The notes under the pieces: generated by a model
The model's input: the letters and a program-made list of their open reading frames with translations, nothing else
Told to the model about the DNA's origin: nothing
Database searches by the model: none
Position numbers and translations under genes: made by a program
Shown here: positions 11,201 to 14,200 of the stretch, piece by piece
How the letters are laid out: each line of letters starts with the position of its first letter
Numbering within the stretch: the first letter of the stretch is position 1
Source: Octopus sinensis
Lineage: Eukaryota
Direction of reading: 5' to 3'
Assembly: GCF_006345805.1 (NCBI RefSeq)
Contig: NC_043025.1
Span: forward strand, 2,790,001 to 2,854,000
Length of the DNA: 64,000 nt

Positions 11201-14200
11201 CGTTGAATATTAATATCCCTACTCTTTCTGTTAGCTACTTATGACGTTATATCATATAACGTTTTTTTAAACAATATTAATAGCGTTCTGTCAATCGCTA
11301 TACAAATCCATCATTTTTTGCTAAAATGTCGTATTGACGAGTTTCGTTTTTTTCACTTTCCCGAAGAGAAGATTGCATTGTTTATACCATTTATTCTTTT
11401 GAATAGTATTAGTGGAATTTTCGAAACATGTGTCGAAAGTAAAAATATTTGTTTACACCTGCGTTAACTCCATTTTTTATTCCTATATATATATATATAT
11501 TTTTTACAAATATATACCTACTCGTATACGAGCTAATCCTATTATAAATATATATATATATATATATATATATAGATATATATATATATATATATATATA
11601 TATATATATATATATATATATATATATATATATATATATATATATATAGTTTTTGTATTTGGTTTGCAAGAAATTGTGTGTTGAAGCAAATTTTGTCGAA
11701 TGTCGTCTCATACATACACGCACACGCACACACACACACACACACACCATCTACACTCACAAACAGATTTCAGAACAATTTATTAATCGGAGTCTGTGTG
11801 AGAAATCTATTTACTCAAGGTGCTGAGAAGTGAGGTTGAGCGCAGGATTCCTTAATTTCCAAGAGAGTTTCTGAAATACTGGCGGCCCCTAATGTAACCA
11901 ATTCCGATGTAAAACAATTCCCCCGTCCCTTACAACGCGTACAACCGTCATATATGAATGGGTATAGAATATTTTTGTAATATTTGTTGTATTATTGTCA
12001 GGCTTTCAAGGCGGCGAGCTGCCAGAAACGTTAGCACGCCTTCTGCCAACTTTTGAAACCACAATATATTTTATGAAGTTGTGCTTTTGGCTAAAGTAAC
12101 GAAGTCTAATTACAACAATCCTAACGTTTGATCGTTTCATGCTTTAGCAATGTATTCCATTGAATAAATTAGTTTATGTAATGAATTCACTTTACAGCTA
12201 ACACAAAACTCTAGTACCAAGCAGAATGCTAGAATCAACAGCCACGTTCTTGCTGCCAGTGTTCCTGACATTCCAATGGGCAACCTTAATGAACCGGTGA
12301 ATATATCATTCAATTTAATACATCAGGTAATAATTGTCTATTTATTATTGATGCTGTTGCTGTTTATGTTCATGCCATCCCAGACCCAGTAGACCCTTGA
12401 TGAAACACATCCCATCTCTTTACAACGTCATTTTAGATTTCATTAGATCTTTCTAGAGCTACTCCATTCAATGTCTTTTCTTCCCCTATTATGACGATTC
12501 TGTGTAAATTATGAGAAAAGATAGATTTACAAAAACAAGATTAAACGGTCAATTAAACTACGCAAAAGCAATTGCTATGGAGTTCACAATGTCAATACCA
12601 ACCAAACATTGACGACCATAGTCTGTTTGGTGTTTTGTTAGTCAAACGAGTCACACATTATATTTACATATATTCTAATTACAAAGTAATCTGATTAATT
12701 TATAATAATTTAATTCGTTTCAGAATGCCCGCAACCTACAATGTGTTTACTGGGATGAAAGCCCAGGACTGAATCCGCATTGGTCCCCAATAGGCTGTCA
12801 TATATCCAGACATGAACCTGGAAAGGAAGTGGTTTGTTCCTGTGACTATCTTACAAGTTTTGCCTTACTAGCGGTTGGTAATATTTTGACAAAATATTAA
12901 TTACCAGTAATTTGGCAGTTGTATGTCTACATTACTGATTTTTAAAGAGTTGCATAACATATCCACAACACTTTGTAATGCAGAGTATCTTGGTAAAGAG
13001 TATCATTGTAAAGGGTCACTGTTGTTGTTGTTGTTGTTGTCATTGCTGTTCTTAATAGTTTATACTCTGGATGGTTCCTTTAAGATGTACGAAACTACCA
13101 TTCTCAATGTAATGCATAGGAATTCCTCCAGTGTTGATGCGAAGGGGATAGGGATCATCAGAATCATCTCTCTTGAATTAAACGTCTTCAGTTGTGTTGA
13201 GACATTCTTGCTATTCAGATGTTAAACGTTTGGTCTCTTCACGATTCTGTTACAAGTTCTCTCCTCCTCTGCATGGTCTTTGTTCACCTGAGACTTTCAT
13301 GTCAATAATACACATGTAACCAGATATCTGTCAGTTAAAAAGCACCTCTCCTCCTATTTACAACAATAAAGCATTCCCCTCTCTATGGTAAATATTTCAG
13401 CCTAAAGGAAATGCCGAAGTAAATGAACATGCTAGTTCCCTCTACACCAGTTCCGGCATCACCTGACAACACAAAGTCGTTGATTAGTCCATAAGTAAAT
13501 AAGATTAAATAGTCAGGACATTGATGCTGTTTCTGTTAGTGTCGGCGTTGCCTGGGACATTATCAATGCAGCATACAATAGTTCTCATCTACACCAGTCT
13601 TATACACACTCGTTACATGAGTGTTAACTAACATATAAGAGAGGAGGTGAAGGAAGAGCTAAACTCTTGTTTGTTTCTCTTGTAGGATATCTACCAGAAT
13701 GAAGGCGAGACAGAAAATGCCTTTTCTATCACATCTAACATTGGCTCTGGAATATCACTTGCCTTTCTCATTCTTACAATAATAATTCATGTTTGTTTCA
13801 GGTAAGTATTTCAATTTCTATTTTCTTTTATAAACTGTTCAAATACAGAGAAACAACATCTGTCAGTTCGTGGGGTTTTCACAGGCTGATCAGATCGATG
13901 CAGGTCGAGGAAAGAGTTCCAGAATATTGTCACTTTGATGAAGAGTAACTCGATAAATATTATAGAGTAGAATTTTTAAGTGACACACTGTAATGATGAC
14001 ACGAGATAAAGGAGTGGGGCGGAATAATCTATCTCGAGTGTTCAAGTAGAATTAATTTATAGCTTTGCAATTCAGAAAAAGTAGAGGAAAAGAGTAGTGG
14101 CAGAAGTGACTCCGTCTCTTCTTCTTCTTCTTCTTCTTCTTCTTCTACCACCACTCCACCAATTATAAAATCATGTTCACGCGCTTGATTCGCAATTTGT

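Follow-up and report, generated by a model that had tools for sequence, protein, structure and literature searches.

A gene on the + strand of the window (the whole stretch of 64,000 nucleotides that was analysed), here called gene A, encodes an adhesion GPCR (class B2), with a secretin-type 7TM and a GPS directly before TM1, in which the catalytic His at GPS position -2 is replaced by Tyr and the Met at Stachel position +7 is replaced by Ala. We consider it rather probable that gene A is a live, naturally non-cleaving receptor whose tethered agonist has been weakened or abandoned. An earlier note on this DNA had described an uncleavable receptor with a weakened tethered agonist, and this is still the most reasonable inference that can be made from the sequence.

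In the assembly sequence, positions 12841-12873 (+) read TGT GAC TAT CTT ACA AGT TTT GCC TTA CTA GCG, followed by GTTGGT, and the resulting GPS motif C-S-C-D-Y-L↓T-S-F-A-L-L-A (the arrow marks the cleavage position) lies within a 150-nt exon (12724-12873, +). The nearest canonical paralogues (O. vulgaris L003 and O. bimaculoides L004) carry GAC CAT CTT ACA AGT TTT GCC G/TTA CTA ATG, so that the Tyr of gene A is one C>T transition away from His and its Ala two transitions away from Met. The earlier note had reported both replacements, and a single transition between CAT and TAT, and it agrees here with the sequence and with the paralogue codons. Where the catalytic triad is H-x-S/T, gene A has Y-L-T; in the Stachel (T-S-F-A-L-L-A vs the core T-x-F-A-V-L-M) positions +1, +3 and +6 are kept and +7 is Ala. 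The aromatic partner of the base is retained in the GPS exon (TAC 12748-12750, in C-V-Y-W; S10.49 as Tyr), as are the Gly-Cys pair (12793-12798), Leu -1, Thr +1 and the disulfide cysteines. Two phase-0 acceptors, one between 12723 and 12724 and one at 13686 for the next exon, fix the frame of the motif, and the weak-looking donor (GCG followed by GTTGGT) is normal for the family, in which paralogues have ATG followed by GTTGGT at the matching place. Coleoids recode by A-to-I RNA editing, which was considered as a rescue and rejected: TAT can be edited only to TGT (Cys) and GCG contains no A, so that neither His nor Met is restorable.

Gene A comprises 13 in-frame exons within the window (2124 nt; Table 1), all with AG/GT borders and free of stops, frameshifts and splice loss, and the intact frame and splice sites claimed in the earlier note are thus borne out over all 13. 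The 3' end of exon 13 is a strong donor; alternatively, reading continues up to a stop at 24606-24608.

Table 1. Exons and notable codons of gene A (positions in the window).
Feature	Position	Strand	Content or basis
Exon 1	2142..2299	+	second half of SEA-like module; earlier exons upstream of the window
Exon 2	3354..3468	+	HRM-like, first part; Pfam HRM weak, E=0.0011
Exon 3	4861..5030	+	HRM-like, second part; orthologous exon in O. bimaculoides L005
Exon 4	6370..6601	+	GAIN subdomain A; 94.8% nt identity to O. bimaculoides L005
Exon 5	6946..7117	+	GAIN A
Exon 6	8859..9017	+	GAIN; 95-96% nt identity to paralogues
Exon 7	12198..12326	+	GAIN B
Exon 8 (GPS exon)	12724..12873	+	150 nt, phase 0/0; last GAIN-B strands, four Cys, two Trp, cleavage site, Stachel core
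GPS cleavage site and Stachel core, C-D-Y-L↓T-S-F-A-L-L-A	12841..12873	+	direct reading, codon table, Pfam GPS PF01825 E=7.7e-12
TAT, Tyr at GPS -2	12847..12849	+	replaces catalytic His (CAT in canonical paralogues)
GCG, Ala at Stachel +7	12871..12873	+	ATG Met in all intact-motif octopus paralogues
Exon 9	13686..13801	+	Stachel C-terminal part D-I-Y-Q-N-E-G-E and TM1
TCT, Ser in TM1 motif G-C-G-I-S	13746..13748	+	Cys in at least 90% of homologues
Exon 10	15789..15909	+	TM2
Exon 11	17794..17935	+	TM3, ICL2
Exon 12	19749..19821	+	TM4
Exon 13	24185..24573	+	ECL2 Cys-Trp, TM5-TM7; Q7.49 and G7.50 retained
TTG, Leu at TM6 toggle-switch W6.53	24381..24383	+	g-l-t-L-v-f vs g-i-t-W-g-f, ADGRG2/ADGRG6 structures

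The Pfam 7tm_2 model matches gene A with E=1.7e-37 (129.5 bits, cut-off 20.6) and the GPS model with 46 bits (cut-off 22.5), the four Cys and two Trp of the latter motif being present, while the GAIN model scores 21.3 bits, under its cut-off of 26.5. The 7TM aligns across TM1-TM7 to the ADGRG2, G6, G3, G4 and L3 structures, with ADGRG2 (E=2.8e-50) and ADGRG6 (1.4e-44) as its best relatives of solved structure. With ADGRG2 (GPR64) and ADGRG6 (GPR126) gene A shares the Stachel pattern T-S-F-A/G-V/L-L-M/L, the TM3 motif LHYFLL..W, F..QG in TM7 and C-W in ECL2; it is not an orthologue of either, its N-terminus consists of LRR plus HRM and departs from the architecture of vertebrate G2 and G6, and it carries other residues in place of His, Met +7 and W6.53. 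Compared with the described adhesion-GPCR motifs (PMC8584163), the Phe of LHxxxLxxFxW in TM3 is Val in gene A and Leu in the octopus paralogues, and TM7 (F-T-I-F-N-T-L-Q-G) keeps the FxxxxxxQG signature. Position W6.53 is Trp (TGG) in 77 of 79 homologues; its change to Leu is common to gene A and its O. sinensis orthologue (L001), and is found too in the canonical paralogue P0003.

The alignment with cephalopod paralogues and orthologues that the earlier note had called for shows His -2 to be the rule from which gene A deviates. Of 243 relatives fetched that are alignable at the GPS motif, 4 have a gap at -2; His is found in 230 of the remaining 239, and the others have Arg (6), Val (2) or Tyr (1), all of these belonging to the octopus cluster of gene A. 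When clusters at 50% identity are each represented by one member, 142 of 145 have His -2 and a single one of 145 has Ala at +7, and the departures of gene A at these two positions exceed chance. Changes at the conserved columns (at least 90%) are few (4 of 63), which indicates that the protein is not generally decayed. They affect 2 of 7 conserved functional sites vs 2 of 56 other conserved sites (Fisher p=0.058), an enrichment that is suggestive only. An assembly or sequencing error, the real sequence being CAT and ATG, is hardly credible: it needs three separate in-frame base changes within 27 nt and one more at 24382, the exon departs from each of the paralogues at 15-21% of positions, which looks like ordinary divergence and not like isolated miscalls, TTG at W6.53 is independently present in the O. 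sinensis assembly, and an independent O. bimaculoides gene shows the same CAT>TAT.

The background given in the earlier note is correct: His is the general base of GAIN autoproteolysis (PMC13062082), and F+3, L+6 and M+7 drive agonism, alanine mutants of F-S3, L-S6 and M-S7 having their basal activity abolished (PMC13062082, PMC9046087). In ADGRF1, M-S7 to Ala abolishes basal activity and W6.53 touches the stalk (PMC9046087). The GAIN of gene A keeps the whole GPS scaffold, with the general base itself gone, and its Tyr -2 matches the state of cleavage-deficient aGPCRs that have no residue able to act as base. Tyr would be unable to deprotonate Thr +1 at physiological pH, so that the N-to-O acyl shift would not begin and the receptor is most probably a single chain. 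The same module is affected twice more, at +7, where Met is now Ala, and at the Trp6.53 toggle, predicted to lie under the bound Stachel, which is now Leu. Both changes shrink side chains and would therefore enlarge the orthosteric pocket without compensating each other, and canonical tethered-agonist drive is expected to be weak or absent. Neither Ala +7 alone nor W6.53 to Leu alone proves lost agonism, and Ala at +7 is natural in some vertebrate aGPCRs (M/L/A at X0.51; PMC13470171). Candidate modes of action for gene A are non-dissociative signalling, Stachel-independent signalling, a purely adhesive function and binding of a different ligand in the enlarged pocket. In cleavage-deficient ADGRF1 the stalk still docks (PMC9046087), and the H>A allele of Cirl in Drosophila is functional (PMC13197933).

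Receptors that naturally lack H-x-S/T are common across the family. The motif is absent from 10 of 32 human aGPCRs (PMC13062082) and is therefore not decisive for aGPCR membership; the case of gene A is not exceptional and would be unsurprising if it stood alone. Like ADGRB1 and ADGRB3 (R-L-S) and ADGRA3 (S-L-S), gene A combines an intact gene and a retained GAIN fold and GPS scaffold with a non-base residue; unlike them, it has Tyr at -2, it retains the Thr nucleophile and the aromatic partner, and its Stachel +7 and TM6 toggle Trp are changed. These receptors also bear on the alternative that gene A is an ordinary two-fragment aGPCR, in which strain-driven chemistry, a different base or a factor specific to certain cell types allows cleavage at or close to the GPS even with Tyr -2. 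The kept Leu -1, Thr +1, aromatic S10.49 (as Tyr), Gly-Cys and disulfide cysteines are consistent with cleavage, CTF-size fragments of ADGRB1 and ADGRB3 occur in brain, though not in HEK293 cells (PMC3321182, PMC13062082), and factors outside the triad influence cleavage according to the available text of PMC12488864. On the other hand, His mutants of several aGPCRs are cleavage-dead (PMC3321182, PMC9046087), ADGRB3, whose base-position residue is Arg, stays uncleaved unless R855H is introduced (PMC13062082), and ADGRA3 is reported as uncleaved at the GPS in the available text of PMC13631675. Our literature search found no receptor with Tyr at -2, nor any reported cleavage of one, and we regard cleavage of gene A as quite improbable.

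Among the matches listed in a protein search with gene A, the top 34 are all from Octopus, and in an NJ tree gene A stands beside P0001, P0024 and P0015, the next branch being the R-L↓K clade. By these comparisons gene A is a lineage-specific paralogue within an octopus-only expansion of LRR/SEA-like/HRM/GAIN/7TM adhesion GPCRs with an ADGRG-like 7TM, and paralogue fragments are found on the opposite strand of the same window. Triad loss is recurrent among the sister genes of this cluster. One sister gene has the triad R-L↓K in O. sinensis (P0005, P0002, P0137) and O. vulgaris (P0022, P0027), its Arg -2 being exactly the solution of ADGRB1 and ADGRB3; the O. bimaculoides orthologue of this sister gene (P0136) has Y-L↓T, with a CAT>TAT identical to the change in gene A and a 3-nt Stachel deletion, and another O. 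bimaculoides paralogue (P0138) has H-L↓A. The sister genes resemble gene A in exon structure, donor, family and a non-canonical triad, but Met +7 and W6.53 are still present in the R-L↓K genes, and P0136 shows the Stachel deletion instead. Since L006 shares 86-89% identity with the R-L↓K loci and 79-84% with gene A, the losses in the sister genes and in gene A are independent events in different genes. On the same figures for its locus, P0136 was rejected as an orthologue of gene A. The O. sinensis protein P0051 was also rejected as an orthologue: its exon 5 is 87% identical, but exon 4 reaches 58% and there are no HRM exons. The O. bimaculoides orthologue of gene A is L005, which is collinear and 84-89.5% identical at the nucleotide level.

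Comparison of gene A with L005 over exons 3-4 gives a dN/dS of 0.32 (19 N : 14 S, p=0.0037). The pN/pS of the gene A branch is 0.60 (54 N : 26 S, p=0.024) and does not exceed the 0.73 of the canonical H-L-T sister branch; the values point to purifying selection on the gene A lineage. Under neutrality along the whole branch, the probability that 2124 nt are still open is about 0.0015. The subfamily is fast throughout (omega 0.6-0.7), so that relaxed and adaptive evolution are not separable. The comparison with the O. sinensis orthologue covers the last exon (L001:931-1318), the GPS exon being expected about 11 kb past the 10-kb flank, on the minus strand of CM016887.1 near 1.685-1.686 Mb if introns have kept their lengths, and gives a dN/dS of about 0.98 from just 14 changes (11 N : 3 S). 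The non-synonymous changes in this exon are mostly on the O. sinensis side (8 N : 1 S, including a charged Asp in TM6), and the window branch has 3 N : 2 S. A search of the protein collection for gene A's own protein or that of the O. sinensis orthologue found none, the best full-length match listed being 67% identical; a short orthologous fragment (P0122) was found there, and an exact-sequence look-up of P0001 and of the last-exon ORF of the window returned no record.

Several of these results could also be accounted for if gene A were a young pseudogene or dying copy in a fast-turnover tandem array, with His -2, Met +7 and Trp6.53 as the first marks of lost constraint. The last-exon dN/dS and the changes on the O. 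sinensis branch fit this, as do the orthologue in L001, which lacks both a gene call and a recorded protein, the gene fragments and rearrangements that abound in the surrounding region, and a 1-bp deletion in the O. vulgaris copy of the sister gene; if neutrality began only at the O. sinensis split, an open frame would remain likely (P about 0.16). Against it stand the 13 undamaged exons, the small number of conserved columns changed, the omega of 0.32 vs O. bimaculoides, the 3 N : 2 S of the window branch, and a gene A branch that evolves no faster than its canonical sister. W6.53L is moreover older than the O. sinensis split, and both frames are still open. The selection tests argue against an old pseudogene, and for a young one we think the case unlikely, though it carries some weight beside the preferred reading of a live, non-cleaving receptor.

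The octopus-specific expansion described as group 3 (Ritschard et al. 2019, PMC6408891) is, in the available text of that paper, an octopus-only clade with GPS and adhesion 7TM, and LRR in some members, which forms tandem clusters and evolves fast or under positive selection; gene A falls within this clade. The cleavage triad is not examined in that text, and recurrent triad loss in one sub-cluster is described here. If the reading of gene A as a non-cleaving receptor is confirmed, gene A and its neighbours would form a natural series of close relatives (H-L↓T, Y-L↓T, R-L↓K and H-L↓A) whose GAIN domains differ in the capacity for self-cleavage against a near-identical background, a convenient comparative system for the debated weight of cleavage and tethered agonist in adhesion-GPCR function. 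For annotation, it would be a warning that "ADGRG6-like" octopus genes are not functionally uniform.

The Stachel pocket of ADGRG3 is used by steroids. A more speculative and rather doubtful extension is that the octopus sub-cluster is shedding autoproteolysis and tethered agonism jointly under selection, and that the Stachel pocket of gene A perhaps serves an external ligand. Were this true, the members of the sub-cluster would be candidates for chemical or mechanical sensing in suckers, skin and axial nerve cord, and not classical dissociating aGPCRs. Within gene A itself, the high identity of exon 6 to the paralogues (Table 1) suggests gene conversion at that exon.

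The GPS motif of gene A, the plus-strand adhesion-GPCR (aGPCR) gene, reads directly as TGT GAC TAT CTT ACA AGT TTT GCC TTA CTA GCG, followed by GTTGGT; the eleven codons translate in frame as C-D-Y-L|T-S-F-A-L-L-A. The GPS exon begins after tttcag in phase 0, and the exon after it (acceptor tgtag|GAT at 13686) can be read through in no phase but 0, so that the GPS-exon donor must be GCG|GTTGGT at 12873|12874. This unusual donor is the family's own donor type: across three Octopus species, five paralogous loci carry ATG|GTTGGT or ATG|GTGGGT at the equivalent donor. The two nearest canonical paralogues read GAC CAT CTT ACA AGT TTT GCC (G/T)TA CTA ATG; a single C>T transition thus separates Tyr at the base position (-2) from His, and two transitions separate Ala at Stachel position +7 from Met. 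The earlier note had read both codons correctly. The length of the GPS exon permits in-frame skipping, which would delete the Stachel core entirely, together with the cleavage site; P0006 and P0020, two annotated O. vulgaris paralogue models, omit it in frame (...NILDQ joined to NVYQ...).

Thirteen exons encoding 708 residues were assembled in the window, with AG/GT borders, compatible phases and no stop codons, which bears out the previous statement that frame and splice sites are intact. Pfam matches are strong for 7tm_2 (E=1.7e-37) and GPS (E=7.7e-12) and weak for GAIN and HRM; the leucine-rich-repeat (LRR) exons present in full-length relatives must sit upstream of the window. The closest solved relatives are ADGRG2 (E=2.8e-50), ADGRG6, ADGRG3 and ADGRG4. 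In a protein search, the top 34 among the matches listed were all from Octopus, named ADGRG6-like or ADGRG2-like, and the best among the matches listed had only 67% identity. The family is the octopus-specific aGPCR expansion designated 'group 3' by Ritschard et al. 2019 (PMC6408891); that paper describes members with GPS and 7TM, some with LRR, in tandem clusters with signs of positive selection, and expression in axial nerve cord, suckers and skin. Non-coding DNA 3' of gene A is collinear with O. sinensis chromosome CM016887.1 (92-94% identity), the minus-strand part of the window has 92-94.5% identity to an O. vulgaris contig, and O. sinensis and O. vulgaris share 95-97% identity in the same region; the window thus derives from an Octopus closely related to these two species and matching neither of them exactly.

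Among 243 relatives alignable at the motif, position -2 holds His in 230, Arg in six, Val in two, Tyr in one and a gap in four; by exhaustive search, 142 of the 145 representatives of 50%-identity clusters carry His. Position +7 in these representatives is nearly always bulky and hydrophobic (M 70, L 42, V 18), and a single other one besides gene A has Ala. Gene A violates only 4 of the 63 columns conserved in at least 90% of 79 homologues, namely His -2, a Leu before TM1, a TM1 Cys and the TM6 toggle-switch Trp (W6.53). By the position assignments of PMC13062082, PMC9046087 and PMC13470171, it keeps all four GPS cysteines, both tryptophans and the Gly-Cys pair, Leu -1, Thr +1, Phe +3 and Leu +6, the ECL2 Cys-Trp, Q7.49 and G7.50. 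Also kept is the aromatic residue 33 positions upstream of the base, the Tyr of C-V-Y-W, which by spacing and motif corresponds to latrophilin-1 F803/S10.49.

The Leu at 6.53, which the earlier note does not mention, takes the place in the alignment of the Trp in g-i-t-W-g-f of both ADGRG2 and ADGRG6. It is shared with the O. sinensis orthologue, and the Trp loss thus predates that split. That the Tyr, Ala and Leu codons are assembly errors is scarcely credible, since it needs four independent miscalls, one of them confirmed in another assembly. P0003, an O. sinensis paralogue with canonical H-L|T and Met +7, also carries Leu in this column (G-I-C-L-T-L-A-F-F), so the toggle Trp can be lost in receptors whose triad is unbroken as well.

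A neighbour-joining (NJ) tree built on the sequence from GAIN-B to TM1 sets gene A beside a clade with canonical H-L|T, made up of O. vulgaris P0001 and P0024 and O. bimaculoides P0015. Alignment with octopus paralogues gave His and Met in the canonical neighbours and revealed triad loss in sister genes as well. The next clade outward (P0005, P0002 and P0137 of O. sinensis; P0022 and P0027 of O. vulgaris) has C-D-R-L|K-S-F-A-V-L-M, with codons CGT (Arg) and AAA (Lys). P0136, the O. bimaculoides orthologue of this R-L|K gene (locus L006, 86-89% identity to the R-L|K loci), has N-Y-L|T-S-F-A-V-M, i.e., the same CAT>TAT change plus a 3-nt Stachel deletion, and P0138, a further O. bimaculoides paralogue, has H-L|A. 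These variants amount to a minimum of three or four independent losses of the triad among closely related octopus genes. In the wider neighbourhood, every sequence found without His belongs to this same cluster, and the repeated losses form a natural comparative series.

The O. bimaculoides contig L005 (2.2 kb, protein P0122) exceeds every paralogue in identity to gene A and is therefore its orthologue. The selection tests draw on parsimony and on 14-80 substitutions each. Against this orthologue, exons 3-4 gave dN=0.064 and dS=0.197 (N:S 19:14, dN/dS 0.32, p=0.0037). On the gene A branch, exons 7-13 (parsimony, with sister P0024 and outgroup P0005) gave N:S 54:26 and pN/pS 0.60 (p=0.024); the canonical sister branch (P0024) gave 52:20 and 0.73 (p=0.15), and the R-L|K gene, O. 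sinensis versus O. vulgaris, 23.5:10.5 and 0.62 (p=0.20). Had the whole gene A branch been neutral, about 6.5 stops would be expected in 2124 nt (P(none) about 0.0015). These dN/dS, branch and stop-codon results suggest a lineage that was constrained for most of its history. The last exon of the O. sinensis orthologue (L001:931-1318), the one exon of it that was compared, is open, without a gene call, and against the window gave N:S 11:3 (ratio about 0.98, p=0.59). With the paralogue used to polarise these changes, the window branch has 3 N : 2 S and that of O. sinensis 8 N : 1 S; neutrality only since that split would leave the frame open with an unremarkable P of about 0.16. Constraint may thus have been lost recently, especially in O. 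sinensis. That gene A is a young pseudogene, as this last exon and the rearranged neighbourhood could indicate, is possible but doubtful, since the frame is unbroken, few conserved sites are violated and omega is 0.32.

In the accepted mechanism, Ser/Thr +1 is deprotonated by His -2 and its hydroxyl attacks the Leu -1 carbonyl, followed by an N-to-O acyl shift and hydrolysis. Because Tyr is no base at neutral pH, the gene A product would most probably not be self-cleaved. Cleavage through a non-canonical route is unlikely. ADGRB1 and ADGRB3, with Arg at the base position, are uncleaved, and R855H partly gains cleavage (PMC13062082, PMC3321182). F-S3, L-S6 and M-S7 lie deepest in the 7TM pocket, and replacing any of them with alanine abolishes the basal activity of ADGRF1 and makes the peptide 6- to 11-fold less potent; W6.53 lies directly beneath the bound stalk and links it to TM3, TM5 and TM7 (PMC9046087). 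L+6 packs on the same Trp (numbered W6.55 there) and on the ECL2 Trp (PMC13470171). Since Ala at S7 and Leu at 6.53 are both smaller residues, they would enlarge the cavity and not compensate each other. Function does not require cleavage, as cleavage-dead ADGRF1 retains stalk docking (PMC9046087), Drosophila Cirl is functional with H>A but not with T>A (PMC13197933), and several natural receptors signal uncleaved (PMC13197933, PMC13062082). Given the lost base, the altered pocket and dispensable cleavage, the best reading of the sequence is an uncleaved receptor with weak or absent Stachel agonism, which would act in a non-dissociative, Stachel-independent or adhesive manner. H-x-S/T is absent in 10 of 32 human aGPCRs (PMC13062082), so a His-less receptor belongs to an already known kind. 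Mildly new are Tyr at -2, for which no such receptor was found in the aGPCR literature searched, the alteration of Stachel +7 and toggle Trp in the same gene as the base, and the repeated triad loss within one octopus sub-cluster.

Coordinates of gene A and of neighbouring features in the window
Feature	Position (strand)	Observation
Gene A	2142-24573 (+)	13 exons
Collinear with L005	4198-6615	84-89.5% identity
GPS exon	12724-12873 (+)	150 nt, phase 0/0
GPS motif	12841-12873 (+)	
Position 6.53	24381-24383 (+)	TTG (Leu); TGG in paralogues
Mosaic exons	8859-9017, 15789-15909, 19749-19821	95-100% DNA identity to paralogues, across species too
Putative repeat	16649-17695	95-96% identity to L002:3155-4156 and 32087-32490 (opposite strand)
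P0005-like ORF	32607-32708 (+)	97% identity to annotated first exon
N-terminal exon copies and C-terminal terminal exon	63419-36606 (-)	SEA-like, HRM modules
Exon-like matches	63419-63288, 60908-60858, 51317-51153, 47376-47254, 45850-45644, 41697-41518, 39831-39778, 38189-38076, 36656-36606 (-)	
Match to 5' half of O. vulgaris P0024 gene	64000-49194 (-)	92-94.5% identity
Purine-/G-rich tract	54000-58000	GC skew 0.35-0.51, AT skew up to 0.20
Trinucleotide runs	6620-6720, 16070-16170, 17690-17790	one adjoins TM3 exon acceptor
TA-rich microsatellites (examples)	500-660, 8150-8300, 11470-11650, 22700-22900, 43540-44000, 61690-61900	translate as IYIYIY

The minus strand carries a string of exon copies that lacks intervening GAIN or 7TM exons; it resembles a truncated or chimeric gene that a rearrangement left behind. 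Its lower exons match P0123, the O. sinensis 'uncharacterized protein LOC115226146', itself a join of fragments of this kind. The window lacks the body of the R-L|K gene, which runs from HRM to TM7 and takes up about 20-30 kb in O. sinensis and O. vulgaris; of this gene it keeps the 5' SEA-like exons and the terminal exon alone (about 36400-38100, set against L001:14894-34155 and L002:82217-111375). In O. sinensis, the terminal-exon region occurs on either side of this body in inverted copies (L001:14590-14894 and 34155-34473), a layout suggesting that the species differ by inversion and deletion. The O. vulgaris R-L|K locus has a 1-bp deletion relative to L001 in the exon before the GPS exon (L002:93931-94057), either a frameshift of that copy or an assembly error.

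Exons and introns adjoining the mosaic exons of gene A have only 77-88% identity, which suggests short-tract gene conversion among tandem paralogues, or unusually strong constraint. The repeat in the TM2-TM3 intron is probably interspersed and recently active. The ORF resembling the first exon of O. sinensis P0005 (MRIFTNVLNYGMIFIMYPNVHSSVTGLNFEFPV) has no P0005-like exons downstream in the window and is probably an annotation device or a young first exon. The strongly purine-rich tract contains low-complexity ORFs rich in G, R, E and K, and TA-rich microsatellites are very numerous across the whole window.
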